This document shows, piece by piece, positions 463 to 44,387 of a stretch of 64,000 nucleotides of DNA; within the stretch, counting starts at the first letter, position 1, and every line of letters starts with the position of its first letter. A program made the translations under genes and the position numbers. This DNA is from Macrostomum lignano (Eukaryota), in assembly GCA_002269645.1 (NCBI GenBank), contig NIVC01003488.1, forward strand, positions 31,331-95,330, written 5' to 3'. A model generated the notes under the pieces. The model was not told the DNA's origin, made no database searches, and saw only the letters and a program-made list of their open reading frames with translations.

Positions 463-1845
463 GGGAGTACGAGATTTGCTAGCAGGAAATCTGCTAGCCG
501 AAGTTTGCTAGCCGAAATCTGCTGGCCGAAGTTTGCCAGCCGAAGTTTGCTAGCAGGAATTTTGCTAGCGAGGATTTTGCTAGCAGGAATTTTGCTGGCC
601 GAACTTCTTGCAACCGGCGTCAAAATATTGCTTGTTTTCTGGCAATGGCAATGCATTGTTTTAGCTAAAAAAACCCCAGAGAACTAAGTAAAATTCCTAA
701 ATATTTTTCTTATAAGATCCTAAAAGCATCAGCATCAGTTCAAGTGCTTGGAAAGTCAGTTTGTCATTGTGGGGGACAGAATACTCTCAAGTCGCAATCA
801 GATAGCTCGTAGTAGGACAGTAGTTGAATTCCTTACTGAACTGTCATGGCTAAATGTTAGCAGAGAAGGCTATAAAAAGTTATTCCAAAACACTGTACAT
901 TTGCTATGTACATTGAGCCCTATCACCTGATCCTTGGTCTGGGGGAATGAGTGAGTGCAGTAGCACAAACAACAGAGAAAGCAGACAAACTTCACATGCC
1001 TACATTTTCTGTTCTAACTGAGGCACAAAGTTGAGACTATATTTGGACAGAGAATGAGTCAATGAAGAATTGTATCAAGTTTGAAGTCAATCGCTGTATA
1101 CGTGGAGCAAACTTGTGTCAGCTGAAAGTTAGTTAATTTTAAACCCCTTTCACACATCTGTCTAGTGGCCAGGAAGGAGAGAGACGGAGTTTGGGGTGGC
1201 TGTCTCGCTGACGAAAAGCAGACTAACTTTAAAAGTACACAGTGCCGTTCAGAATTAACTTCGAGACTCGAAACTTTATACGATTGTGTCAAAATAGTTG
1301 AAAATTGGATTGTGTCCAATTTGAAGAGGATTGGTAAAAGTGGAGCGACGCTATAGAGGATTTAGTGAAATTCTTGCGAAACTGGACAAGCAAATTGTCT
1401 CTAGCTAATTACAACTTCCTGAGTTCGGCTAGCCAAATTGCTGCTTGCCGGTTTTGGTTGGATTCTTGCTAGCAGATTTCGGCTAGCTAAATTCTCGCTA
1501 GCAATATTCCTGCTAGCAACTTTCGGCCAGCAAAATTCCAGCTAGCAAATCTCGGCTAGCAAAATCCTCGTTAGCAAAATTCCTGCTAGCAAGCTTCGGC
1601 TGGCAAACTTCGGCCAGCAGATTTCGGCTAGCAAACTTCGGCTAGCAAACCTCGGCTAGCAGGTTTCGGCTAGCAGATTTCGGCTAGCAAACTTCGGCCA
1701 GCAGATTTCGGCTAGCAAACTTCGGCCAGCAGATTTCGGCTAGCAAACTTCGGCTAGCAAACTTCGGCTAGCAGATTTCGGCAAGCAAATTTCTCGCTAG
1801 CAAACTTCGGCTAGCAGATTTCCTGGTAGCAAATTTCATAGACCC
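463..1845. mobile_element. Non-autonomous foldback/Mutator-like DNA transposon
   Basis: Left end GGGAGTACGAGATTTGCTAGCAGGAAATCTGCTAGCCG (463) is the imperfect reverse complement of the right end CGGCTAGCAGATTTCCTGGTAGCAAATTTCATAGACCC (1845). Both arms are built of ~15-bp GCTAGC-containing repeats (about 470-605 and 1420-1835). 9-bp TSD TATCGATTT (454-462) / TATCAATTT (1846-1854), one mismatch. No transposase inside. Confidence 0.8.
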
Positions 1846-1871
1846 TATCAATTTGCCTCCCCCGGTCGCAC

Positions 1872-2585
1872 ATGCAGAATCGGGTGCTGGACCAGCAGAT
1901 CACGCAGCTGCTAGACAGGCACCGGTACACCGGAGAAGAGCACGCCTGCAAGCGGCATCGGCAGGAGGACAACATGACCCACTGTGCCCTGATGCGCGCT
2001 CACTGTCACGCTTGGACACTGCTCGAACGGGCCATTGAGCCATTCGAACTCACCTGTACGCCGAATCACGGGCCGAAGGAGTTGGACACTCCGGTTGCGC
2101 GGCCTGTCAAAGCCGGCTGGCTGTCTAAGGCCAACAATCGCCGGTTGGCTTCCAGCAGCTGCCCAGCTAATATGGCGGCTTCATCTGGCGGCGCTGGCAG
2201 CGGCGGCGGCTTTCGCGGCCAGCGCTGCTGGCAGCCACCGGCCCAGCCACCAGCTGCTCGACGATTGCCGGCGGCGGCGGCGGCGGCGGCTCCCACGCCT
2301 CCGGCTGTGAACTTTTTCGAGCCTGGTTGTCAAGACGACCGCTACGCCGACGAAGTCGACGAGGATTGCGTGTCGCAGGCGCCCAGCGACTATTGTCCGG
2401 CTGCTCTGGAGCACGAGTTCACCCGGGCCGTGTCTATGGAATCGAGGCTGCCGGTCGCTGCTCGCCAGGATAGCGGCTTTGTCGACACTGTTACCGTCGG
2501 CGGCGTCGGAGGTGCCGGAGGTCGCGGTCGAGGCCGCGGTCGACCGAAGGCTAGCGGACCTCGCGCACCTATCATTATCGACTGA
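1872..2585 (+). CDS. Probable terminal exon of an unidentified gene starting upstream of the window
   Basis: GC-rich 237-codon ORF; pyrimidine tract plus CAG acceptor at 1875-1877, so the exon probably starts at 1878; low-complexity Ala/Gly C-terminus; AT-rich 3'UTR-like sequence follows; no family recognised. Confidence 0.5.
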   Translation: MQNRVLDQQITQLLDRHRYTGEEHACKRHRQEDNMTHCALMRAHCHAWTLLERAIEPFELTCTPNHGPKELDTPVARPVKAGWLSKANNRRLASSSCPANMAASSGGAGSGGGFRGQRCWQPPAQPPAARRLPAAAAAAAPTPPAVNFFEPGCQDDRYADEVDEDCVSQAPSDYCPAALEHEFTRAVSMESRLPVAARQDSGFVDTVTVGGVGGAGGRGRGRGRPKASGPRAPIIID

Positions 2586-7759: not shown

Positions 7760-9505
7760 CTCTCTCCTTCCTTGATCCGCCCTCTCCTTTCTCAACCCGC
7801 CCTCTCCTTCCTCAACCCGCCCTCTCCTTCCTCAACCCGCCCTCTCCTTCCTCAAACCACCCTCTCCTTCCTCGATCCGCCCTCTCCTTCCTCAAACCAC
7901 CCTCTCCTTCCTCGATCCGCCCTCTCCTTCCTCGATCCGCCCTCTCCTTCCTCAAACCACCCTCTCCTTCCTCGATCCGCCCTCTCCTTCCTCAACCCGC
8001 CCTCTCCTTCCTCAACCCGCCCTCTCCTTCCTCAACCCGCCCTCTCCTTCCTCAAACCACCCTCTCCTTCCTCGATCCGCCCTCTCCTTCCTCAAACCAC
8101 CCTCTCCTTCCTCGATCCGCCCTCTCCTTCCTCAACCCGCCCTCTCCTTCCTCAAACCACCCTCTCCTTCCTCAAACCACCCTCTCCTTCCTCAAACCAC
8201 CGTCTCCTTCTTAGATTCGCCCTCTCCTTCGTAGATCCGCCCACTCCTTCCTAGATCCGCCCTCTCCTTCCTCAACCCGCCCTCTCCTTCCTCAAACCAC
8301 CCTCTCCTTCCTAGATCCGCCCTCTCCTTCCTCAAACCACCCTCTCCTTCCTAGATCCGCCCTCTCCTTCCTCAAACCACCCTCTCCTTCCTAGATCCGC
8401 CCTCTCCTTCCTCAACCCGCCCTCTCCTTCCTCAAACCACCCTCTCCTTCCTCGATCCGCCCTCTCCTTCCTCGATCCGCCCTCTCCTTCCTCAAACCAC
8501 CCTCTCCTTCCTCGATCCGCCCTCTCCTTCCTCAACCCGCCCTCTCCTTCCTCAAACCACCCTCTCCTTCCTCAAACCACCCTCTCCTTCCTCAAACCAC
8601 CCTCTCCTTCCTCAAACCACCCTCTCCTTCCTCAAACCACCCTCTCCTTCCTCAAACCACCCTCTCCTTCCTCAAACCACCCTCTCCTTCCTCAAACCAC
8701 CCTCTCCTTCCTCAAACCACCCTCTCCTTCCTCAAACCACCCTCTCCTTCCTCAAACCACCCTCTCCTTCCTCAAACCACCCTCTCCTTCTTAGATTCGC
8801 CCTCTCCTTCGTAGATCCGCCCACTCCTTCCTAGATCCGCCCTCTCCTTCCTAGATCCGCCCTCTCCTTCCTCAACCCGCCCTCTCCTTCCTCAAACCAC
8901 CCTCTCCTTCCTCAAACCACCCTCTCCTTCCTCAAACCACCCTCTCCTTCCTCAAACCACCCTCTCCTTCCTCAAACCACCCTCTCCTTCCTCAAACCAC
9001 CCTCTCCTTCCTCAAACCACCCTCTCCTTCCTCAAACCACCCTCTCCTTCTTAGATTCGCCCTCTCCTTCGTAGATCCGCCCTCTCCTTCCTAGATCCGC
9101 CCTCTCCTTCCTCAACCCGCCCTCTCCTTCCTCAAACCACCCTCTCCTTCCTAGATCCGCCCTCTCCTTCCTCAAACCACCCTCTCCTTCCTAGATCCGC
9201 CCTCTCCTTCCTAGATCCGCCCTCTCCTTCCTCAAACCACCCTCTCCTTCCTAGATCCGCCCTCTCCTTCCTCAAATCACCCTCTCCTTCCTCAACCCGC
9301 CCTCTCCTTTCTCAACCCGCCCTCTCCTTCGTAGATCCGCCCACTCCTTCCTAGATCCGCCCTCTCCTTCCTAGATCCGCCCTCTCCTTCCTCAAACCAC
9401 CCTCTCCTTCTTCAACCCGCCCTCTCCTTTCTCAACCCGCCCTCTCCTTCCTCAAATCCACCCTCTCCTTTCTCAACCCGCCCTCTCCTTCCTCAAATCC
9501 ACCCT
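7760..9505. repeat. 20-bp minisatellite (CCTCTCCTTCCTCAAACCAC / CCTCTCCTTCCTAGATCCGC)n, ~85 copies
   Basis: Direct reading; 20-bp register across lines. Confidence 0.98.
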
Positions 9506-9974
9506 TTTTCTATTCAATTCTCGTTGGTTGTTGCACTTTGTGACAAAGAAGACCGCAAAAAGCGAGACCTCTAAATATTTTAACGGTAAACTACTATAAG
9601 TAAGTGCATTCGGATATACCAATATTTATTTTGAAAATTAAATCAGCAAATCGAATATCGTGGCAGGCATCAGCTGGAAGAATGCAAGAATGCGCGACCA
9701 GTACAAATGTTTGTTCAGATAAGGCATGCCGAAGGAAAACCCTAAGTAGATTAGGAAAGTAGAAGAAAAACAATAAGATAAAAATCTTGATTTTCGTTGA
9801 ATTTGGTGTAACATAGCTTGCGTATGACGCTGCATACCAAAATATCAAGCACTGTTTAAGTTATTTAAAGTTAATTTTTTGAATTGGCACTAAAATTCAG
9901 CTACTAATAGTAGCGAATGCTAAAAATTACTCAAGCTAATAACAAAGTTTATATAAAGCTAACCCCAGCCTGGC

Positions 9975-10400
9975 TGGGGTGGTGGTTTCGGGGCTGTGGC
10001 TACCCTGGATGGGGTGGTGGTTTCGGGGCTGTGGCTACCCTGGATGGGGTGGTGGTTTCGGGGCTGTGGCTACCCTGGATGGAGTAGTGGTTTCGGGGTT
10101 GTGGCTACCCTGGATGGGGTGGTGGTTTCGGGGCTGTGGCTACCCTGGATGGGGTGGTAGTTTCGGGGCTGTGGCTACCCTGGATGGGTGGTGATTTCGG
10201 GATTGTGGCTACCCTGGATGGGGTGGTGGTTTCGGGGTTGTGGCTACCCTGGATGGGGTGGTGGTTTCGGGGTTGTGGCTACCCTGGATGGGGCTGTGGT
10301 TGTGTGGTGTGGCTACACAGGGGCCTGAATTGGGCTGTGGTTGTGTGGTGTGGCTACACAGGGGCCTGGATTGGGCGGGGGTTGTGGCTACATAGGTGAT
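9975..10400. repeat. 35-bp G-rich minisatellite (GGGGTGGTGGTTTCGGGGCTGTGGCTACCCTGGAT)n
   Basis: Period of 35 (10011 to 10046). Confidence 0.95.
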
Positions 10401-10715: not shown

Positions 10716-13700
10716 TCATTCATCACCAGCATCGTCTTTGTACAGCACTAGCAGACAGGGCGACAGCTGCCTGGGATCGAACACCAGGTATTCCCTAGCC
10801 AAGTTATCGTCGCCTTTGTAAGCCGAACGGCCAGGACACAGCAGCGATTGGTAGCCGGCCGAGGGGCCGGCGCGGCCGCGGCAGGGCGACACGACGGTCT
10901 CGGTGGCGCCGAGGGCCGCCCAGACGAGGAGCAGCATCCCGGATGGAGCGTACAGGGCAGCCGTGAGCGGCGAGGGACTCAAATAGAAGCCTAAGCCGAA
11001 TGCGCCCTGGCAAAGTGTTGCATTTTTAAAAGATAATGTTCATCGATTTTACGTCGCCTAAAATTTAAGTCTTACTAAAATAAGCGACTTTTGCCTAAAA
11101 ATACATTAAAATGCTTCTTGTTTACTTTCTACTGAACTGCAAGTAGTTTACACGCAAATCTAGTTATTATTTATATAGGTTGGTTGTAGCCTAGTGGTTA
11201 CAGCGTCGGACTCACGACAGAAGGTCGGGGGTTCGATTCCCGGTCCCACTCGGAACAATTTGTGTCTTTGAGCAAGACACTTAACTCTGCATTGCTTCAG
11301 TTCACCCAGCTGTAAAATGGGTGCCAGCATTAGCTGGGGTAATTGAGGGTGTGTGTGGCGACCCCCCCTCCCCCCAGTCCTTGGACTGAACAGCCGTACG
11401 CAGCCTTCAGATGCGCTGCGCAATAGCTGCGGCTGAGCTGTCGGTTGGACATCTGGCCTCATTGGGGCAGGTGAAATCAATTATTAATATTCAAACTATC
11501 TGTAACTTCTTTACACGGCTAGTGAAGGGCCAGAGAGGGCAAGCAAGGTGCCCCTACCTGCTCCATGTGCTCAGCTCCGGTGAATCCGCGCTCTAGCAGA
11601 GCCTCGCAGGCCTCGGCCCGCCGTGGTCCGCACAGGTACAGCTGGGTGCACTGCGCGTGCTGCTGCTGCTGTTGCTGGCGCCACAACTCGGACAGAGCGG
11701 TCGCGGGTTCGCGCACCGCAATGACCCGGTGCCGACCATTCGGCGCCCGGGGATCGGAGTTCAGACCGCGCTCAATTCGCGCGGCAGCTTGGCGCCAGCG
11801 CGCTGGAACAGCCGGATCGGTTTTTTCTACGGTGGCGGCGCTCTCTGGCGCGTCCGACAGAGAAGCCGCCTTCTGAGGCCCGTCAGCTGCCTCGCCGCCT
11901 TCGGCACCGACCCCAGTCGCTAAGCGCAGCTGCTCGGTGAGCGAGCGAATCAGGTCGTCCCTGGACTGCACCAGCAGGCGGAGATGGGCCAGCTCGTGGC
12001 GCATTCGTTCGAATAGAATTGTTTGGGAGTTTAGAGACTTAACCTGACAAATGCAAGTTGGGGATGGATGAGTGCGAGTTACGCATCGGCTTATATAGAT
12101 AAGCACTGAAAACGCCTGGGGTAGTTAGTGGCGGCAACGATACTTAAAAAATTAGGAGGGTGGCGGCACATCAAAGGACAGGAGTTATAGCGGCACCTCA
12201 AAGGATCGGGGAGGTATAGCGGTACATCAAAGGATCGGGGAGGTATAGCGGCACATCAAAGGATCGGGGAGGTATAGCGGCACATCAAAGGATCGGTGAG
12301 GTATAGCGGCACATCAAATGATACGAGTTATAGCGGCACATCAAAGGATCGGTGAGGTATAGCGGCACATCAAATGATACGAGTTATAGCGGCACATCAA
12401 AGGATCGGGGAGGTATAGCGGCACATCAAAGGACCGGGGAGGTATAGCGGTACATCAAAGGATCGGGGAGGTATAGCGGTACATCAAAGGATCGGGGAGG
12501 TATAGCGGCACATCAAAGGATCGGGGAGGTATAGCGGTACATCAAAGGATCGGGGAGGTATAGCGGTACATCAAAGGATCGGGGAGGTATAGCGGTACAT
12601 CAAAGGATCGGGGAGGTATAGCGGTACATCAAAGGATCGGGGAGGTATAGCGGTACATCAAAGGATCGGGGAGGTATAGCGGTACATCAAAGGATCGGGG
12701 AGGTATAGCGGTACATCAAAGGATCGTGGAGGTATAGCGGTACATCAAAGGATCGGGGAGGTATAGCGGCACATCAAAGGATCGGGGAGGGAGCGGCGCA
12801 TCAAAGAAATCCATAGCCTCACCTGCTGAGCCCGATTAGCGAAGAACTGCCGTTCCATCTCCTTGGCTTCGAGCCGAGGCGAGTAGGTCAGGGCCGGGTG
12901 ATCGGGCGCGAAGGCGGACCAGGGCGGGTGGTAGGACATGATAGTGCAGTTATAAAACTGATCAGCGAACTCTTTCCATTTCTCGTTCATCACAGGGTCG
13001 GTGATGAAGCCCCAGCGGGCGAAGAAGGACACGGCGTCGGGATCGGCGTGGACAACCACAGCGGAGTGGCGGCCCACGATGGCGGGATCCTTGAGGCTGC
13101 GGAGCAGGGCGCTGCCCAGGCCAGCCCGGCGGAACCGAGATCGGACGGCCAGGAAGACCAGGTGGACGACGCGCTCGCCCTCCACAGTTTTCAAATCGAA
13201 GGTGGCCGCCCCCGCGAGCCGATCCACAACGGCGGGGTTGGCGGCTTTGGCTTCATTGGTTGAGCTTTCTGGTGCGCCTTCTGTGGCACCTGGTTGGAGT
13301 TGGTTGGGGTTGATTGGAGTTGCTTGCTCTTGGTTGGAGTTGGTTGGAGTTGGTTGGTGTCGCTTGGAGTTGGTTGGCGTTGTTTCGAGTTGATTGGTGT
13401 TGTTTCGAGTTGGTTGGTGTTGCTTGGAGTTGGTTGGTGTTGTTTCGAGTTGATTGGTGTTGCTTGGAGTTGGTTGGCGTTGCTTGGAGTTGGTTGGTGT
13501 TGTTTCGAGTTGATTGGTGTTGTTTCGAGTTGGTTGGTGTTGCTTGGAGTTGGTTGGTGTCGCTTGGAGTTGGTTGGTGTTGCTTGGAGTTGGTTGGTGT
13601 TGTTTCGAGTTGGTTGGTGTTGCTTGGAGTTGGTTGGTGTTGCTTGGAGTTGGTTGGTTGGTGTTTGCGCAATGTACATGTTGGGCTGTTAGCCACCGAG

Positions 13701-15545
13701 TTTGACTGTGTACTTTCGAAGCCAGTGGACAGTGGGGTGTACTTTTGGACGAATAGCTGTGTGCATTCGGGCGAGTAAGGGTAGGTGTGTACTTCTGGCT
13801 TGAGCAGGAGTGTACTTTTAGAGAAAGTAGAGCGTGTACTTTTGGGTTTCAGGGTGGGCGGAGCGTGTTGGTCATTAGTTGATCAAGGCTGCTCAGATCC
13901 GCTCTAGCCATGCTGATGAGGCATCCGCCCAGCTCACCGTCAGCCGCCTTTATCCGATCAGCCGCTCGAGCCTCAAATTGAATTCGCGATTCCAGCTGCC
14001 GCCGGATGAAGCCGCGATAACCGACTGAGAAATCATCTTCATCATCATCGTCGTCCTCATCTTCCCATTCGCCGTCGCCGTCGCCACCGGTCTCGCCGTC
14101 CTCATCAGACGAGTAGAACTGCACAAAGTCGGAGGTTCGCTCCGGCTCTGGCTCAAAGTGGTCCAGCTCGGCCTCGTCTGGCGGAGTGTACTTTGCTAAC
14201 AGCGGCACGTACAGGGCCTTGCGAGCCTGCGCCAGGGCCTCTCCGATTGGCTGAGGCTCGACCGCCGGGTCGCCAGATGCCGAACTATTAATCAGGCAGT
14301 TTCACGGACGGAGTGGTGCAACATGGGCAGGTACTCGGACACACAAGCTACTCTGAAGCAATAGATATCCCATTGATCCTTCACATCCCCCAGCTAGATA
14401 GCCAGTAGATATCCCGTTGATCCTTCACATCCCCCAGCTAGATAGCCAGTAGATATCCCGTTGATCCTTCACATCTCCAAGCTAGATAGCCAGTAGATAT
14501 CCCATTGATCCCCAAGCTAGATAGCCGGCAGATATCCCATTGATCCCCAAGCTAGATAGCCGGCAGATATCCCATTGATCCCCAAGCTAGATAGCCGGCA
14601 GATATCCCATTGATCCCCAAGCTAGATAGCCGGCAGATATCCCATTGATCCCCAAGCTAGATAGCCGGCAGATATCCCATTGATCCCCAAGCTAGATAGC
14701 CGGCAGATATCCCATTGATCCCCAAGCTAGATAGCCGGCAGATATCCCATTGATCCCCAAGCTAGATAGCCGGCAGATATCCCATTGATCCCCAAGCTAG
14801 ATAGCCGGCAGATATCCCATTGATCCCCAAGCTAGATAGCCGGCAGATATCCCATTGATCCCCAAGCTAGATAGCCGGCAGATATCCCATTGATCCCCAA
14901 GCTAGATAGCCGGCAGATATCCCATTGATCCCCAAGCTAGATAGCCGGCAGATATCCCATTGATCCCCAAGCTAGATAGCCGGCAGATATCCCATTGATC
15001 CCCAAGCTAGATAGCCGGCAGATATCCCATTGATCCCCAAGCTAGATAGCCGGCAGATATCCCATTGATCCCCAAGCTAGATAGCCGGCAGATATCCCAT
15101 TGATCCCCAAGCTAGATAGCCGGCAGCTATCCCAGCTCAGCCCTTACCTCTCCTCCTGCTGTTTCTGCAATTTTTTCCTCTCAGCAGCCAGAGCTCTCTC
15201 TGCCCGCGCCTCAGCCGCTGCCAAAGCCTCCTCAGGCTCTCGCACAGCAACCAGACTGTAGGTATTATCCCCAGACACAGTCGAATAGATAATCTCAGTC
15301 TCCATGGAACCCAGAGCAACATCGTACAGCGCGGCGAGAGCGTGCACCAAATCCTGCGCCGGAATGCCGGCAACTTGACAAGCGGATTTAAATGTTGGAT
15401 TTAGAAGCCGTTTAATATTGACCAGGTAAACTGAGAGCCGGTGACGCCCGGACGGGCCGTAAGGAACCGACAGGTCTGTCAGACAGACCGCCGGCTGCCC
15501 AACCAGCAGCTGCTTGACGATGCCCTCCAGGTTGCGGCTGCTGCT
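10716..15545 (-). CDS. GNAT acetyltransferase - coiled coil - PARP-like ADP-ribosyltransferase fusion protein, 5' end unresolved. Exons about 15545-15148, 14284-13938, 13289-12823, 12043-11558, 11006-10716.
   Basis: All four junctions are GT-AG and phase-compatible (2,1,0,0). GNAT: VHLVFLAVRSRFRRAGLGSALL and HADPDAVSFFARWGF, like the Gcn5 motif A and YADNYAIGYFKKQGF. PARP-like: LYLCG..ALLERGF..GAFGLGFYLS..AALY..MLLLVWAALG..GYQSL..EYLVFDPRQLSPCLLVLY. Confidence 0.85.
11178..11465 (+). mobile_element. tRNA-derived SINE, family 1 (CORE/Meta-like central domain)
   Basis: A-box TAGCCTAGTGG, B-box GGTTCGATTCC, central TGTGTCTTTGAGCAAGACACTTAACTCTGCATTGCTTCAGTTCACCCAGCTGTAAAATGGG resembling the MIR/CORE domain; second copy at 15775-16047. 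Confidence 0.85.
12165..12800. repeat. 29-bp intronic minisatellite (GGCACATCAAAGGATCGGGGAGGTATAGC)n
   Basis: Direct reading; lies in intron 12822-12044. Confidence 0.95.
13290..13665. repeat. 20-bp intronic minisatellite (TGCTTGGAGTTGGTTGGTGT)n
   Basis: Direct reading; abuts the acceptor of the GNAT exon. Confidence 0.95.
14365..15135. repeat. 35-bp intronic minisatellite (GATATCCCATTGATCCCCAAGCTAGATAGCCGGCA)n
   Basis: Direct reading; homogeneous copies. Confidence 0.96.
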
Positions 15546-15774: not shown

Positions 15775-16047
15775 AATAGGGCCAGATGTGCAACCGACAG
15801 CTCAGCCGCAGCTATTGCGTGGCGCATCTGAAGGCTGCGTACGGCTGTTCAGTCCAAGGACTGGGGGGTCGCCACACACCCTCAATTACCCCAGCTAATG
15901 CTGGTACTCAATTTACAGCTGGGTGAACTGAAGCAATGCAGAGTTAAGTGTCCTGCTCAAGGACACAAATTGTTCCAGTGGGACCGGGAATCGAACCCCC
16001 GACTTCAAAGTTGTGAGTCCGACGCTCCAGTCAGGAGGCTACAAACC
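15775..16047 (-). mobile_element. tRNA-derived SINE, family 1, second copy
   Basis: Reverse complement of 11178-11465 with scattered substitutions (GGAATCGAACC is the B-box on the minus strand). Confidence 0.85.
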
Positions 16048-16059
16048 TCGCTACTAGAT

Positions 16060-16830
16060 TACAGGATACTAATAGGGACTACTTGATACTAATAGGGACT
16101 ACTGGATACTAATAGGGACTACAGGATACTAATAGGGACTACTGGATACTAATAGGGACTACTGGATACTAATAGGGACTACTGGATACTAATAGGGACT
16201 ACTGGATACTAATAGGGACTACTGGATACTAATAGGGACTACTGGATACTAATAGGGACTACTGGATACTAATAGAGACTACTGGATACTAATAGAGACT
16301 ACTGGATACTAATAGAGACTACTGGATACTAATAGAGACTACTGGATACTAATAGGGACTACTGGATACTAATAGAGACTACTGGATACTAATAGGGACT
16401 ACTGGATACTAATAGAGACTACTGGATACTAATAGGGACTATTGGATACTAATAGAGACTACTGGATACTAATAGGGACTACTGGATACTAATAGAGACT
16501 ACTGGATACTAATAGAGACTACTGGATACTAATAGGGACTACTGGATACTAATAGGGACTACTGGATACTAATAGAGACTACTGGATACTAATAGAGACT
16601 ACTGGATACTAATAGGGACTACTGGATACTAATAGAGACTACTGGATACTAATAGAGACTACTGGATACTAATAGAGACTACTGGATACTAATAGGGACT
16701 ACTGGATACTAATAGAGACTACTGGATACTAATAGAGACTACTGGATACTAATAGAGACTACTGGATACTAATAGAGACTACTGGATACTAATAGGGACT
16801 ACTGGATACTAATAGAGACTACTGGATACT
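16060..16830. repeat. 20-bp minisatellite (ACTGGATACTAATAGGGACT)n
   Basis: Direct reading. Confidence 0.97.
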
Positions 16831-17859
16831 AGTAATTGCTACATTTTACAGCAAAATTTAGGCCTTAGAAAAGCTTATAACAATTTTCTTGGGCTTGTGG
16901 GTCTACAATAAAGTACATCATGTAGTTATTCACAATGAAAACATTGTAGATCAATTAGTTTATCTACAGCATATTATATATCGCTATGGAAATAAATGTA
17001 CAAAAAGAAACCCAATTAAAATCATTGTAGCAACATAATGAAAACGTGAAAATTAGTTCGATGCACATTTATAATCAAATAGCACGCGCACTAGAAACTA
17101 GTTAAAGTAGCATAATTAAGCGGATAAATTTAATCTATAAAACCCCTGCATTAAGGATGCACTGCAGGTCAAGTATTAAAAGAGAAATTAAGTGCAGAAC
17201 GAATTAGCGTACCAAACAACATATAAAAACAGAACTAAAAAGACAATGCCAGGACAACATAATATCGCTCTGAATTGCTTATACAATATTGAATGAATAA
17301 CCAGCATCTCAAGAAGATTTTGATTGCTATATAAAAAACAGCTAGCTTATAAGGAAAGACACTGATAGAGTAATTAAATCGCGCAGAATGTAAGACAGAA
17401 TTTCAATTCACGCGAAATATTATTGTGAAATTAAAACAAAACATTATTTTGTAGTTTCCAATGAGCCTATCGCTTTGAAGTGCACAGAAGCCAAACTGTG
17501 TTGTCCAATAAAAAATTACCGAGTACTATCACATGGGCTATGACAGAACAAAAGACCAAACAGTAAAATCATGCACAAATCTGTACAGTACACAACAGGT
17601 CAACATTATAACAAAGAAAAAAAGGTTTCTGTCGCATTGAATGTATAATAACATAGGGGTGCAATAAAGAATATCAATCAGCTTTCAGTCATTCATTCGC
17701 ATTGCACAGCTCAGTAAATGCACCGCTTTAACGCTTAGTGTAAGCTAGAATTCAGTTCGACCGCTTGCATACGTTTAGTACTGGTTATTATTAATTACCT
17801 GAGATCCTCAAACACAATTTGAAATCCCTAATCCTAATCCTGAAATTCTAAATCATGAT

Positions 17860-18110
17860 ATCAGATCCTCAATTACAATCTGAGATCCTCAATTACAATC
17901 TGAGATTCCAAATGACAATCTGAGATCCACAATGACAATCTGAGATTCCCAATGACAATCTGAGATCCACAATGACAATCTGAGATCCCAAATGACAATC
18001 TGAGATCCCAAATGACAATCTGAGATCTCAAATGACAATCTAAGATCTTCAATGATAATCTGGGATCCCTAATGAAAATGAGATTCCTATTGTAGTATGA
18101 GATCCCTAAA
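17860..18110. repeat. 20-bp minisatellite (AATGACAATCTGAGATCCCA)n
   Basis: Direct reading. Confidence 0.9.
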
Positions 18111-18430: not shown

Positions 18431-18580
18431 AGCAGATAGTGAACCGCAGTGACGCATTGAATTTCAGAACTTTTCCGAATATTTAGGGCCAATCCTAACA
18501 AGTGATCCTGGGAAATCCCAAATCCTAGCAACAGATCCCAGAGACCGCTTCAGAGCCCTCTGGATCCCGACTTTCTCCAT

Positions 18581-20104
18581 TCATCCGGCCGCGGCCGTCC
18601 GCCCAGACAAGTTGGCCCTGGCCACGGTGTAAACAGCCAGGCCAATAACAATGAGCACAACGGCCAGTATGAGCAGCAGCAGAGCCCGATTCTGCACCAC
18701 CCTGCGCAGCATGCCGCTCAGTATCCGACTGCTGGCGCCCAGATCCCTATCGGCGCCGCGTAGCCGGTCTCGGCCGCGCTCCAGCGTCTCCCGCTGTCCG
18801 GCCAGATCGGCCAGAATGGTCCGGCCAACTTGTTGAGTTGTTTCAACACTGCCAAGGCCTTCGTCGATACGACGACCGGCACGTTCGAGACGTTCGGTAT
18901 TGTCCAGCAGGCGGGTGCGGTAGTCGGAGGCCAGCTCGTCGTGGCGATGCTGCAGCGACTGTTCGGCCTCCGACAGAAGCTCGTCTCGATCCCGCTTGGC
19001 CTGGCCGGCCTCTCTGGCAGTTCAAATGAGGATTGGGGATAAATCAGTGGATCTAGGAGGATTCGTAACCCAGATGAGCTCTAGGAGTGGCGAGGGACCA
19101 AGATGAAGACCTGGGAGGATTGGGAAACCAAGATGAGGATCTGGGAGGATTGGGAAACCAAGATGGGGATCTGGGAGGATTGGGAAACCAAGATGAGGAT
19201 CTGGGAGGATTGGGAAACGAAGATGGGGATCTGGGAGGATTGGGAAACCAAGATGAGGATCTGGGAGGATTGGGAAACGAAGATGGGGATCTGGGAGGAT
19301 TGGGAAACCAAAATGGGGATCTAGGAGGATTGGGAAACCAAAATGGGGATCTAGGAGGATTGGGAAACCAAAATGGGGATCTAGGAGGATTGGGAAACCA
19401 AGATTGTGATCTGGGAGGATTGGGAAACCAAGATGGTGATCTGGGAGGATTGGGAAACCAAGATGGGGATCTGGGAGGATTGGAGATTAAGATTGGGGAT
19501 CTGAGAGGATTAGGGGTCAGGGAGAGTTGTGGGATCAAGATAGGGATTCGAGAGGATTGGAGATTAAGATAGGGATCTGAGAGGATTTGGAGATTAATAT
19601 GGAGATCTGGAACCATTGGGAAACCAATAGTGTTCTGGGAGGATTGATGGGTCAAACTGGGATCTGGGAGATCGGGAGGATCTGTGAGTAGAGCGGCAGC
19701 ACCCAGAGGATCAGTGAGTAGGGTGTGGGCCCCATTTACCTAGCCCGACGAAAATCCACCTCCAGTTTCTTGTGCTCGGCGGAATAGCTCTGCAGCCGGG
19801 TGGTGTACTTCTGCCTGAGCGATGGTGGCTGGCTTCGTATCTCCAGCTCCAGCTGTTCCAGGGTCTCCTTGGCCTCGGCAAACAGCCGCTCTGCTTGGCT
19901 AATAGTGGTCACTCGGTCATCTATAGATACACAAAAATAGTAAGTTATTGATTTTTGGACACAAGAATAGCAGACAATATATCTTATTTATTTATGTAAA
20001 GTGACCTCACCTGTACTTGATAGGTGACTAATCTGGTTAATTTTACTAGTTATCTCGGCTGTTGTTATGCCAAACTGCTGCTCATAGGTCTCCAGTAAGG
20101 ACAT
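18581..20104 (-). CDS. VTI1A: Vesicle transport v-SNARE VTI1A homolog, 235 aa, 3 exons (20104-20011, 19920-19740, 19013-18581)
   Basis: MSLLETYEQQFGITTAEITSKI.., EAKETLEQLELEIRSQPP, RLLDNTERLER, ASSRILSGMLRRVVQNR plus a C-terminal TM helix; collinear with VTI1A; GT-AG introns in phases 1 and 2; 708 nt. Confidence 0.95.
19085..19500. repeat. 30-bp intronic minisatellite (GATCTGGGAGGATTGGGAAACCAAGATGGG)n
   Basis: Direct reading; inside VTI1A intron 2. Confidence 0.95.
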
Positions 20105-39275: not shown

Positions 39276-40071
39276 NNNNNNNNNNNNNNNNNNNNNNNNN
39301 NNNNNNNNNNNNNNNNNNNNNNNNNNNNNNNNNNNNNNNNNNNNNNNNNNNNNNNNNNNNNNNNNNNNNNNNNNNNNNNNNNNNNNNNNNNNNNNNNNNN
39401 NNNNNNNNNNNNNNNNNNNNNNNNNNNNNNNNNNNNNNNNNNNNNNNNNNNNNNNNNNNNNNNNNNNNNNNNNNNNNNNNNNNNNNNNNNNNNNNNNNNN
39501 NNNNNNNNNNNNNNNNNNNNNNNNNNNNNNNNNNNNNNNNNNNNNNNNNNNNNNNNNNNNNNNNNNNNNNNNNNNNNNNNNNNNNNNNNNNNNNNNNNNN
39601 NNNNNNNNNNNNNNNNNNNNNNNNNNNNNNNNNNNNNNNNNNNNNNNNNNNNNNNNNNNNNNNNNNNNNNNNNNNNNNNNNNNNNNNNNNNNNNNNNNNN
39701 NNNNNNNNNNNNNNNNNNNNNNNNNNNNNNNNNNNNNNNNNNNNNNNNNNNNNNNNNNNNNNNNNNNNNNNNNNNNNNNNNNNNNNNNNNNNNNNNNNNN
39801 NNNNNNNNNNNNNNNNNNNNNNNNNNNNNNNNNNNNNNNNNNNNNNNNNNNNNNNNNNNNNNNNNNNNNNNNNNNNNNNNNNNNNNNNNNNNNNNNNNNN
39901 NNNNNNNNNNNNNNNNNNNNNNNNNNNNNNNNNNNNNNNNNNNNNNNNNNNNNNNNNNNNNNNNNNNNNNNNNNNNNNNNNNNNNNNNNNNNNNNNNNNN
40001 NNNNNNNNNNNNNNNNNNNNNNNNNNNNNNNNNNNNNNNNNNNNNNNNNNNNNNNNNNNNNNNNNNNNNNN
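39276..40071. other. Assembly gap (796 N)
   Basis: Run of N. Confidence 1.
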
Positions 40072-43000
40072 ACACCTCACTTTACTCTCTACTTCTGTCT
40101 ACACCTCACTTTACTCTCTACTTCTGTCTACACCTCACTTTACTCTCTACTTCTGTCTACACCTCACTTTACTCTCTACTTCTGTCTACACCTCACTTTA
40201 CTCTCTACTTCTGTCTACACCTCACTTTACTCTCTACTTCTGTCTACACCTCACTTTACTCTCTACTTCTGTCTACACCTCACTTTACTCTCTACTTCTG
40301 TCTACACCTCACTTTACTCTCTACTTCTGTCTACACCTCACTTTACTCTCTACTTCTGTCTACACCTCACTTTACTCTCTACTTCTGTCTACACCTCACT
40401 TTACTCTCTACTTCTGTCTACACCTCACTTTACTCTCTACTTCTGTCTACACCTCACTTTACTCTCTACTTCTGTCTACACCTCACTTTACTCTCTACTT
40501 CTGTCTACACCTCACTTTACTCTCTACTTCTGTCTACACCTCACTTTACTCTCTACTTCTGTCTACACCTCACTTTACTCTCTACTTCTGTCTACACCTC
40601 ACTTTACTCTCTACTTCTGTCTACACCTCACTTTACTCTCTACTTCTGTCTACACCTCACTTTACTCTCTACTTCAGTCTACACCTCACTTTACTCTCTA
40701 CTTCTGTCTACACCTCACTTTACTCTCTACTTCTGTCTACACCTCACTTTACTCTCTACTTTTCTGTCTACACCTCACTTTACTCTCTACTTCTGTCTAC
40801 ACCTCACTTTACTCTCTACTTCTGTCTACACCTCACTTTACTCTCTACTTCTGTCTACACCTCACTTTACTCTCTACTTCGTCTACACCTCACTTTACTC
40901 TCTACTTCTGTCTACACCTCACTTACTCTCTACTTCTGTCTACACCTCACTTTACTCTCTACTTCTGTCTACACCTCACTTTACTCTCTACTTCTGTCTA
41001 CACCTCACTTTACTCTCTACTTCTGTCTACACCTCACTTTACTCTCTACTTCTGTCTACACCTCACTTACTCTCTACTTCTGTCTACACCTCACTTTACT
41101 CTCTACTTCTGTCTACACCTCACTTTACTCTCTACTTCTGTCTACACCTCACTTTACTCTCTACTTCTGTCTACACCTCACTCTAGTCTCTACTTCTGTC
41201 TACACCTCACTTTACTCTCTACTTCTGTCTACACCTCACTTTACTCTCTACTTCTGTCTACACCTCACTTTACTCTCTACTTCTGTCTACACCTCACTTT
41301 ACTCTCTACTTCTGTCTACACCTCACTTTACTCTCTACTTCTGTCTACACCTCACTTTACTCTCTACTTCTGTCTACACCTCACTTTACTCTCTACTTCT
41401 GTCTACACCTCACTTTACTCTCTACTTCTGTCTACACCTCACTTTACTCTCTACTTCTGTCTACACCTCACTTTACTCTCTACTTCTGTCTACACCTCAC
41501 TTTACTCTCTACTTCTGTCTACACCTCACTTTACTCTCTACTTCTGTCTACACCTCACTTTACTCTCTACTTCTGTCTACACCTCACTTTACTCTCTACT
41601 TCTGTCTACACCTCACTTTACTCTCTACTTCTGTCTACACCTCACTTTACTCTCTACTTCTGTCTACACCTCACTTTACTCTCTACTTCTGTCTACACCT
41701 CACTTTACTCTCTACTTCTGTCTACACCTCACTTTACTCTCTACTTCTGTCTACACCTCACTTTACTCTCTACTTCTGTCTACACCTCACTTTACTCTCT
41801 ACTTCTGTCTACACCTCACTTTACTCTCTACTTCTGTCTACACCTCACTTTACTCTCTATTCTGTCTACACCTCACTTTACTCTCTACTTCTGTCTACAC
41901 CTCACTTTACTCTCTACTTCTGTCTACACCTCACTTTACTCTCTACTTCTGTCTACACCTCACTTTACTCTCTACTTCTGTCTACACCTCACTTTACTCT
42001 CTATTTCTGTCTACACCTCACTTTACTCTCTATTTCTGTCTACACCTCACTTTACTCTCTACTTCTGTCTACACCTCACTTTACTCTCTACTTCTGTCTA
42101 CACCTCACTTTACTCTCTACTTCTGTCTACACCTCACTTTACTCTCTACTTCTGTCTACACCTCACTTTACTCTCTACTTCTGTCTACACCTCACTTTAC
42201 TCTCTACTTCTGTCTACACCTCACTTTACTCTCTACTTCTGTCTACACCTCACTTTACTCTCTACTTCTGTCTACACCTCACTTTACTCTCTACTTCTGT
42301 CTACACCTCACTTTACTCTCTATTCTGTCTACACCTCACTTTACTCTCTACTTCTGTCTACACCTCACTTTACTCTCTACTTCTGTCTACACCTCACTTT
42401 ACTCTCTACTGTCTGTCTACACCTCACTTTACTCTCTATTTCTGTCTACACCTCACTTTACTCTCTACTTCTGTCTACACCTCACTTTACTCTCTACTTC
42501 TGTCTACACCTCACTCTAGTCTCTACTTCTGTCTACACCTCACTTTACTCTCTACTTCTGTCTACACCTCACTTTACTCTCTACTTCTGTCTACACCTCA
42601 CTTTACTCTCTATTTCTGTCTACACCTCACTTACTCTCTACTTCTGTCTACATCTCACTCTAGTCTCTACTTCTGTCTACACCTCACTTTACTCTCTACT
42701 TCTGTCTACACCTCACTTTACTCTCTACTTCTGTCTACACCTCACTTTACTCTCTACTTCTGTCTACACCTCACTTTACTCTCTACTTCAGTCTACACTC
42801 ACTCTAGTCTCTACTTCTGTCTACACCTCACTTTACTCTCTACTTCTGTCTACACCTCACTTTACTCTCTACTTCTGTCTACACCTCACTTTACTCTCTA
42901 CTTCTGTCTACACCTCACTCTAGTCTCTACTTCTGTCTACACCTCACTTTACTCTCTACTTCAGTCTACATCTCACTCTAGTCTCTACTTCTGTCTACAC

Positions 43001-43570
43001 CTCACTTTACTCTCTACTTCTGTCTACACCTCACTTTACTCTCTACTTCTGTCTACACCTCACTTTACTCTCTACTTCAGTCTACATCTCACTCTAGTCT
43101 CTACTTCTGTCTACACCTCACTTTACTCTCTACTTCTGTCTACACCTCACTTTACTCTCTACTTCTGTCTACATCTCACTCTAGTCTCTACTTCTGTCTA
43201 CACCTCACTGACTCTCTACTTCTGTCTACACCTCACTTTACTCTCTACTTCTGTCTACACCTCACTTTACTCTCTACTTCAGTCTACATCTCACTCTAGT
43301 CTCTACTTCTGTCTACACCTCACTTTACTCTCTACTTCTGTCTACACCTCACTTTACTCTCTACTTCAGTCTACATCTCACTCTAGTCTCTACTTCTGTC
43401 TACACCTCACTTTACTCTCTACTTCAGTCTACATCTCACTCTAGTCTCTACTTCTGTCTACACCTCACTTGACTCTCTACTTCAGTCTACATCTCAGTCT
43501 ACTCTCTACTTCAGTCTACATCTCAGTCTACTCTCTACTTCAGTCTACATCTCAGTCTACTCTCTACATC
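40072..43570. repeat. 29-bp satellite (ACACCTCACTTTACTCTCTACTTCTGTCT)n, >115 copies
   Basis: Period of 29 (40101 to 40130); degenerates at its right edge. Confidence 0.98.
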
Positions 43571-44387
43571 AGTCCGTTAAATTACAGATTAAATATATGA
43601 CTTATTATATCTTATGGATAAGCAGATCTGCAATCAGTGAATATACACTGTGAGAAGATCTATCTATTCCCCTGTTCATAGAGGTTAAGAGATTTCTCTG
43701 AGGACCAGAGTCTGGCTAAATTAGATTCAACTTCCTATACTATGCAGGCTGTATTATGCATAGGAGGCGATATCCCAGTCCCGAAGTGCACTCCCCCTAA
43801 GCCTGATGGTTCCTCTCTTCCCCTCTCTCTAAATAATTTCCTAATATGGGAATTGGTAATGTTTTCTATTGCTATAAAGTGTAGAAGTGTAGAATGGGAG
43901 ATGCGGGTCTGGGCTGCAGCCTCTTCCCCCACCCCGGCCTCGGTCTCGCCAACGCCGGCTTAGCCTGGGGTCACGTGAGGACATGCAGGCCAGACATTAA
44001 AGCCCGCTATGCAAACTGGCGAGAGAGAGAGGAGTTTTACGTGAGGAGACAGTCAAAACACAGCTTCCTTTACGGGACACGGGCGCCATCATCGATTACA
44101 ATTCTGTCTGAGTGCCTAACATTACCTTGGCCTGACCTGAACTCTCCTTACTTTAATCATCTACATCCTCCTCTCACATCCTTTCTGTCCTCTAATCCTG
44201 GAATCAATTCTTGAGTCTATACTCACGATCAGTATAGTATGCCTCAGACTGTGTTAATATTAGGATGCTACTGCTGCCGTAATTTATGGGAGCCAGACTA
44301 GAGAATCCTGTCTGCATTGATTGACGCTACTTATTGCACAGACTATACTCGGATATATTGTATGGCGTGGGTGAAACAACAACAACA

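Follow-up and report, generated by a model that had tools for sequence, protein, structure and literature searches.

A Gcn5-like acetyltransferase fold joined to a PARP-like domain in Macrostomum lignano and its holozoan relatives

Introduction

Can a single polypeptide chain carry one domain that writes with acetyl-CoA and another that writes with NAD+, and would both still be enzymes? This question is raised by a gene on the minus strand of a 64,000-nucleotide stretch of the Macrostomum lignano genome (assembly GCA_002269645.1, contig NIVC01003488.1, positions 31,331 to 95,330 of the forward strand), which is called the window here and to which all coordinates refer. A first-pass annotation made from the DNA letters alone had read five exons among minisatellite-filled introns as one protein with a Gcn5-type GNAT domain, a coiled coil and a C-terminal PARP fold, and thus as two writers in one chain, and had not recognised this architecture among the characterised families of either kind. 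Here we describe the gene and the family to which it belongs, and weigh whether the encoded protein might be a Gcn5-like acetyl-CoA-binding protein with a non-canonical PARP-like module rather than a double writer.

Results

One gene encodes both domains

The locus is a single protein-coding gene of M. lignano, Mlig018772.g2. The translation of the five joined minus-strand exons agrees at every residue with the deposited 656-aa protein BOX15_Mlig018772g2 (partial, Macrostomum lignano), which is placed on the same contig. The open reading frame (ORF) is unbroken over 656 codons and the stop, and all junctions of the five open segments (10716-15543) are GT-AG and, as had been claimed when the exons were first joined, in phase. 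The motifs quoted at that time, RRAGLG, HADPDAVSFFARWGF and FERMRHELAHLRLLVQSRDDLIRSL, are all present in the protein. The M. lignano annotation was guided by RNA-seq, with trans-splice and poly(A) evidence cutting transcriptional units into.g1 and.g2 genes (PMC5730564). Since the annotation is transcript-guided, the deposited model already argues for one mRNA.

The architecture belongs to an ancient family

In 1.84 billion representatives, searched exhaustively with phmmer, 180 relatives were found, of which 26 have E<=1e-30. A word-indexed homologue search had turned up nothing beyond the M. lignano protein itself and a single frameshifted relative, so phmmer was needed to reveal the family. 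Full-length colinear matches (phmmer E=1.5e-57 to 1e-45) are 600-800-aa proteins of amphioxus, echinoderms, molluscs and coelacanth, and at least 35 cluster representatives are colinear over both domains; the Plakobranchus protein, for example, is aligned in one stretch, 178-650. Relatives with both domains come from invertebrate deuterostomes (amphioxus, starfish, sea cucumber, sea urchin), molluscs (abalone, other gastropods, chiton), vertebrates (sawshark, elephant shark, coelacanth, salamanders, caecilian, frogs), a sea anemone, a ctenophore and the unicellular holozoan Pigoraptor, and there is also a Cyanophora entry. A full-length alignment of 17 members, which served as the family profile, has 16 invariant columns distributed over all modules. 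Judged from these sequences, the GNAT-PARP family is ancient and holozoan, predates animals, and is catalogued but unstudied; the M. lignano gene is an ordinary, divergent member of it.

Not all relatives appear complete. A nemertean relative is an isoform truncated within the PARP-like domain, and apparently PARP-less forms are found in trematodes, lampreys, a crinoid and a sponge. No amniote was found among the relatives whose names were looked up, which were a limited sample. One metaclust sequence (P0002, 450 aa) is 71-85% identical to the M. lignano protein, with frameshifts through the GNAT core and segments missing. The M. lignano genome is partly duplicated, and this sequence is probably either a duplicate in decay or a poor gene model from it.

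Database entries for the relatives carry Pfam GNAT and PARP calls and are labelled 'uncharacterized', 'hypothetical' or 'N-acetyltransferase domain-containing', and several fish orthologues are named si:dkeyp-50b9.1 in NCBI, after a zebrafish gene. The members of this si:dkeyp-50b9.1 group (for example XP_014351554 from Latimeria, XP_038068410 from Patiria and XP_078573734 from Branchiostoma) have the same module order as the M. lignano protein. The zebrafish gene stands in a list of testis-upregulated genes, beside sycp3, hormad1 and dmc1 (bioRxiv 10.1101/650218). Apart from this mention, nothing on the family was found in the literature, and the surveys of PARP evolution and of ADP-ribosyltransferase (ART)-like proteins that were examined mention no GNAT fusion. 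The architecture thus has no counterpart among characterised KAT and PARP families and no paper of its own, as first suspected, but it is not peculiar to this locus.

A Gcn5-type GNAT fold split by an insertion

On the single M. lignano sequence, two Pfam acetyltransferase families score above their gathering cut-offs, Acetyltransf_10 (32.2 bits vs 23.6, E=1.2e-7) and Acetyltransf_1 (27.2 bits vs 20.7, E=5e-6). The nearest solved sequence is that of Tetrahymena GCN5 (tGCN5, E=3e-4), and the family profile matches tGCN5 at E=5.4e-12, with the N-terminal part of tGCN5 matched weakly, as a separate stretch. When residues 98-257 were deleted from each orthologue, the profile aligned in one stretch to tGCN5 residues 15-159/162 (E=3.1e-12).

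An AlphaFold2 model built with a 148-sequence alignment reached a mean predicted local distance difference test score (pLDDT) of 84 and a predicted template-modelling score of 0.63; a single-sequence run gave a pLDDT of 39. The high-confidence stretches are aa 10-100 (pLDDT 82-96), 260-365, 381-440 and 479-651. In the N-terminal half of the GNAT domain, a strand (28-36), two helices (57-71 and 77-84) and a second strand (89-96) are modelled, followed by long helices and an acidic disordered tract; the C-terminal half then has strands 267-278 and 281-291, the motif-A helix, strand 319-324, helix 326-334 and strand 358-362. With a pLDDT above 90 in both halves, the model fits the GNAT core order beta1-alpha1-alpha2-beta2, insertion, beta3-beta4-alpha3-beta5-alpha4-beta6. 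Profile and predicted structure together show a Gcn5/PCAF-type GNAT fold that is split between beta2 and beta3 by a helical and acidic insertion of about 160 aa (aa ~98-257). The acidic tract of this insertion is present in all orthologues of the 17-member alignment, and its residues 190-206 have a pLDDT below 50. The Gcn5-type domain of the first-pass annotation is therefore real, but its fold is divided between exons A and C and does not lie in one exon. The GNAT half is not represented among the 50 PDB matches listed by Foldseek, all of which are PARP chains.

After tGCN5, the best sequence and profile matches in the Gcn5/PCAF group (KAT2A/B) are KAT2A and KAT2B. The family has in common with this group motif A (R-x-x-G-x-G), motif B (Y/H-A-D..FF..GF) and a Gcn5-specific C-terminal 'KW..F...Y...T.M'. 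Motif A is RRAGLG in M. lignano (aa 296-301); across the family, its first position is R in 91 and Q in 29 of 126 sequences, its first Gly is kept in 90 of 126, and its last position is G in 123 and A in 4 of 128. Unlike Gcn5/PCAF, the family has the insertion, lacks a bromodomain and a PCAF-homology region (Pfam scans of the M. lignano protein and 17 orthologues found no bromodomain or other KAT2 domain), and has replaced the catalytic glutamate. The position of the Gcn5 general base (tGCN5 E122, yeast Gcn5 E173, in beta4) is occupied by His285 in the M. lignano protein, and by Q in 46, H in 31, D in 16, Y in 8 and E in 4 of 121 family sequences. Gcn5 mutants with Glu changed to Gln are severely impaired; many GNATs use bases other than Glu.

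A long central helix

The coiled coil that had been read from the sequence is present as a 60-residue helix (aa 381-440), confidently predicted by AlphaFold2. Its length, together with weak coiled-coil Pfam matches in orthologues, suggests that the protein probably dimerises through it.

A tankyrase-like PARP fold without the motif-I histidine

The PARP call is sub-threshold on the M. lignano sequence alone, but it is secured by the family profile, the Pfam matches of the orthologues and the structure prediction. PF00644 is matched in 16 of 17 orthologues at E<=0.01 (best 8e-12), the M. lignano protein being the exception, and the 17-member profile matches tankyrase-1 across the whole catalytic domain (E=4.4e-12) and PARP13 at E=4.5e-8. 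All 50 listed Foldseek matches of the AlphaFold2 model are catalytic domains of tankyrase-1/2, PARP13 and PARP4. Most of them have E values around 1e-7, probability 1.00 and, for the domains of the tankyrases and PARP13, target TM-scores (TMt) of 0.62-0.71, among them tankyrase-1 4tor_A (E=9.1e-8, probability 1.00, TMt 0.64); three longer target chains have 0.42-0.50. These alignments and the model show the C-terminal domain to be a predicted tankyrase-like PARP (ART) fold, as proposed from the sequence.

The family profile pairs with tankyrase-1 at 'LYxCG'/'MLFHGS', 'GxGLYFS'/'GAGIYFA', 'SKAAQF'/'SKSNQY' and 'QEYVVF..Q..P'/'AEYVIY..Q..P'. The triad of the M. lignano protein is thereby Cys536-Tyr568-Glu632: Cys536 pairs with the His of tankyrase-1 'LFHGS', Tyr568 in 'GFYLS' with 'GIYFA', and Glu632 in 'REYLVF' with 'AEYVIY'; Gly537 and Tyr579 are also present, and Leu574 stands at the Ser position. 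In PARPs, the motif-I His contacts both the amide of the nicotinamide and the 2'-OH of the adenosine ribose; the Tyr makes a stacking contact with the nicotinamide, and catalysis falls to the acidic residue (PMC7955679). Among 51 re-aligned PARP-like domains of the family, none has His at motif I, where mainly C, G, A or S is found. The motif II Tyr and the motif III Glu are each kept in about 40 of the 51, and the triads C-Y-E (20), G-Y-E (9), A-Y-E (5) and S-Y-E (3) together make up 37. Animal mono-ADP-ribosyltransferases (mono-ARTs) typically retain H-Y but not the Glu, and PARPs without the motif-I His (PARP13 with Y-Y-V, PARP9 with Q-Y-T) are regarded as inactive. By losing His and keeping Tyr and Glu, the family shows the reverse of the known divergence of mono-ARTs and pseudo-PARPs.

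The fold is the same as that of the catalytic domain of tankyrase-1/2 (PARP5a/b; the H-Y-E clade), with a TMt of about 0.65, and the family keeps the G of 'HG', 'G-x-G-[LI]-Y-F', 'SKAA', 'DS' and 'EY[VI][VI][FY]..Q..P.YL[IL].Y'. Unlike the tankyrases, it has replaced the motif-I His and lacks ankyrin repeats, a SAM domain and an aligned zinc-binding loop segment. A PARP fold with an incomplete triad and a non-catalytic use is also known from the C-terminal domain of PARP13/ZAP (2x5y, 4x52) and from TASOR/TEX15 (DUF3715). The single best structural match by TM-score is PARP13 2x5y (TMt 0.71); in PARP13 both His and Glu are lost, whereas the GNAT-PARP family has lost only the His. No DUF3715 Pfam match was found in the M. 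lignano protein (E<=1) or in 17 orthologues (E<=0.01), and there is no WWE or zinc-finger context.

The mean pairwise identity among orthologues is 36% for the PARP-like domain, 36-46% for the GNAT halves (36% for the N-terminal half) and 35% for the helix, compared with 18-25% for linker and insertion. The PARP-like domain is thus clearly more conserved than linker and insertion, which argues that it is under selection and not decaying.

Exons, introns and the 5' end

The coordinates of exons, introns, active-site residues and neighbouring features are given in Table 1. Introns 1-3 are filled with minisatellites, as described at first, and intron 4 holds a short interspersed nuclear element (SINE)-like repeat. 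An inverted copy of this repeat lies upstream of exon A, and the two copies are 95% complementary. An origin of the repeat as a tRNA-derived SINE is unsupported, since ARAGORN finds no tRNA. At the start of exon D, two AG acceptors lie 6 nt apart; the one at 12043, used in the deposited model, adds Val-Lys, and the one at 12037 is also in frame, so that the two may serve as tandem alternative acceptors.

No ATG occurs in exon A before residue 75, although residues 1-75 are conserved and confidently modelled. Its reading frame is open to 15542 and is closed by an in-frame TGA at 15545-15543; a splice acceptor must therefore be used there, and the exon at 15543 is not the real 5' end of the gene. 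AG acceptors are present at 15545-15544, 15542-15541, 15539-15538 and 15526-15525. Between 15545 and the stop of the Vti1-like gene upstream (~18560), an AT-rich region of 3 kb, no convincing coding exon or ATG was found. Since the orthologues have only a few extra N-terminal residues in the 17-member alignment, very little of the M. lignano protein is missing. The spliced leader of M. lignano ends in ...TTGCATG, i.e. in an ATG (PMC8629364). Joined through the AG at 15526-15525, this ATG would be in frame (M-GIVKQ...), yet the deposited coding sequence (CDS) begins one codon further 5'.

Table 1. Features of the GNAT-PARP gene and of its surroundings in the window.
Feature	Position	Strand	Content
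Exon A	15148..15527	-	aa 1-126 + 2 nt of deposited partial CDS, exact translation; N-terminal beta-hairpin, GNAT N-terminal half (aa ~25-97 = 15455-15237), beginning of helical insertion
Intron 1	14285..15147	-	44-bp and 35-bp minisatellites, 14362-15134 (35-bp x19 = 14473-15134)
Exon B	13938..14284	-	aa 127-243; helical and acidic low-complexity insertion (DEDGETGGDGDGEWEDEDDDDDEDD), then conserved 'DFSxG..F' helix
Intron 2	13290..13937	-	20-bp x18 minisatellite, 13291-13658
Exon C	12823..13289	-	aa 243-398; GNAT C-terminal half (aa 258-365 = 13245-12922) with His285 (13164-13162), motif A RRAGLG (13131-13114) and HAD motif with Asp325 (13044-13042); long helix begins
Intron 3	12044..12822	-	29-bp x22.5 minisatellite, 12163-12806
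Exon D	11558..12043	-	aa 399-560; rest of long helix (end at 11918), disordered linker, first half of PARP-like domain (from aa 479 = 11803) with Cys536 (11632-11630) and Gly537
Intron 4	11007..11557	-	SINE-like interspersed repeat, 11252-11463
Exon E	10716..11006	-	aa 561-656 and TGA at 10718-10716; second half of PARP-like domain with Tyr568 (10985-10983), Leu574 (usual Ser position), Tyr579 and Glu632 (10793-10791)
SINE-like repeat, inverted copy	15775-15976		upstream of exon A
Minisatellite blocks around gene	8000-10386, 12163-12806, 13291-13658, 14362-15134, 16056-16831, 17799-18087, 19097-19609		
Vti1-like gene	~18560-19900	-	C-terminal exon ~19050-18560 (V-SNARE_C, transmembrane helix, stop); N-terminal piece ~19900-19740
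Maelstrom-domain gene	~716-2585	+	PF13017
DnaJ ORF	26414-30763	+	intronless, 1449 aa
Strand-asymmetric region	40001-44000		GC skew -0.6 to -0.8, AT skew -0.3 to -0.4

Surroundings in the window

Directly upstream, on the same strand as the GNAT-PARP gene, is a gene for a Vti1-like Qb-SNARE; the two may form one transcriptional unit, with the SNARE gene as.g1. On the other side, a Maelstrom-domain gene of the piRNA-pathway type is convergent to the GNAT-PARP gene; this neighbourhood may be coincidental, and is of note beside the germline hint for the family. Farther away, an intronless ORF begins with a DnaJ (J) domain (E=2.6e-13), and its remaining ~1350 aa have no Pfam match. Minisatellites (periods 20-60 bp, up to 75 copies) crowd introns and intergenic DNA, and the coding exons stand out as GC-rich islands. 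The extreme strand asymmetry at 40001-44000 suggests a long strand-biased satellite.

Discussion

The two folds that were read from the sequence are both present in one chain, and motif A as well as the Tyr and Glu of the PARP-like pocket are kept. The further claim that they are two writers held only in part, since the PARP motif-I His is absent from all 51 domains and the Gcn5 Glu is replaced. For the same reason, canonical ADP-ribosyl transfer by the GNAT-PARP protein is doubtful, indeed unlikely on its conserved residues, and acetyl transfer is unproven. We therefore prefer, at a probability of about one half, to see in the protein an acetyl-CoA-binding Gcn5-like protein that carries a non-canonical PARP-like module for the binding of a ligand or partner. 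The GNAT module would still bind acetyl-CoA, as inferred from the retention of motif A (R/Q-x-x-G-x-G) and motif B, and would probably acetylate a substrate with a base other than Glu (His285 in M. lignano; Q, H or D elsewhere), and the central helix would probably dimerise the protein. The PARP-like module might serve regulation or targeting, being no standard writer but no dead remnant either. That it is not a canonical NAD+-dependent ADP-ribosyltransferase follows from the family-wide replacement of the motif-I His by a small residue; that it binds a ligand or partner is suggested by the Gly, Tyr and Glu kept in the nicotinamide pocket and by a conservation equal to that of the GNAT N-terminal half. 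A candidate ligand would be a molecule of the nicotinamide or ADP-ribose type whose adenosine end is altered. The testis enrichment of zebrafish si:dkeyp-50b9.1 hints at a germline role.

Several points weigh against this interpretation. Among the aligned members, the M. lignano protein diverges most (~23-30% identity, with a poly-Q insert), its own Pfam PARP match (PF00644) stays below the cut-off (13.7 bits vs 26.7, E=0.046), and the pocket Ser, kept in about half of the family members, is Leu574. Unless the PARP-less gene models are truncated, the PARP-like module would be dispensable in some lineages. Only the helix length and the weak coiled-coil Pfam matches in orthologues back dimerisation, and the link to zebrafish depends on the NCBI naming of orthologues. 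With a general base so variable, the GNAT domain could be a binder only, and the kept Glu and nicotinamide-pocket residues could equally mean a real, non-canonical catalysis. All functional statements made here rest on residue conservation.

A true bifunctional writer, in which the GNAT domain acetylates and the PARP-like domain ADP-ribosylates with NAD+ or a related dinucleotide so that two marks or metabolites are coupled, would explain why both domains are constrained, why motif A is kept and why most members retain Tyr, Gly and the catalytic Glu (and about half of them the Ser), a retention of Glu that is unusual for dead PARPs. We consider it unlikely, with the motif-I His missing in 51 of 51 domains, a loss that is taken as a mark of inactivity in PARP13 and PARP9, with the Gcn5 catalytic Glu replaced, and with Leu in place of the pocket Ser in M. 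lignano.

The substitution of both canonical residues, from Glu to Q, H or D in the GNAT domain and from His to C, G, A or S in the PARP-like domain, could also be read as the mark of a double pseudoenzyme, that is, of a scaffold or reader with a coiled coil, made up of a dead histone acetyltransferase (HAT) fold and a pseudo-PARP in the manner of TASOR or ZAP. The inactive PARP13 domain as best match by TM-score (2x5y) and the loss of the PARP module in some lineages fit this possibility. It seems improbable to us nonetheless, as motif A, which binds the acetyl-CoA pyrophosphate, is well preserved, non-Glu bases are common among GNATs, and the retention of Tyr and Glu in the PARP pocket would be unexpected if selection acted on a scaffold alone.

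A more speculative variant, to which we give only a slim chance, is a re-tooled PARP pocket in which the small residue in place of His would admit a phosphorylated adenosine ribose, such as that of NADP+, CoA/acetyl-CoA or an acetyl-ADP-ribose-type molecule. An artefact, in which adjacent GNAT and PARP genes were misjoined or a pseudogene decays in a repeat-rich region, could appeal to the long minisatellite introns, the first exon without a start codon and the frameshifted relative P0002, but it has next to no credit: both forms of it are rejected on the colinear architecture in independent gene models from more than 30 species across phyla and on the intact 656-codon ORF, and the canonical in-phase junctions, the conserved residues in both domains and the transcript-guided annotation speak against it as well.

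PARP and Gcn5 families are among the best-studied enzymes of chromatin and signalling, yet for the GNAT-PARP clade no literature was found beyond the gene-list mention. Should the family prove inactive, it would be one more pseudo-PARP/pseudo-HAT scaffold, and a very old one. Should instead the re-tooled pocket be true, Gcn5-like acetyl-CoA chemistry would be physically coupled to the sensing or transfer of a non-NAD+ dinucleotide, possibly in the germline, and the [C/G/A/S]-Y-E triad would define a new catalytic or sensor class in the ART superfamily. The function is directly testable, since M. lignano is open to transgenesis and RNA interference and the zebrafish orthologue is reported to be testis-enriched. 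With its His lost and its Tyr and Glu kept, the GNAT-PARP clade offers a clean test case for what a PARP fold does without its NAD+-anchoring histidine.

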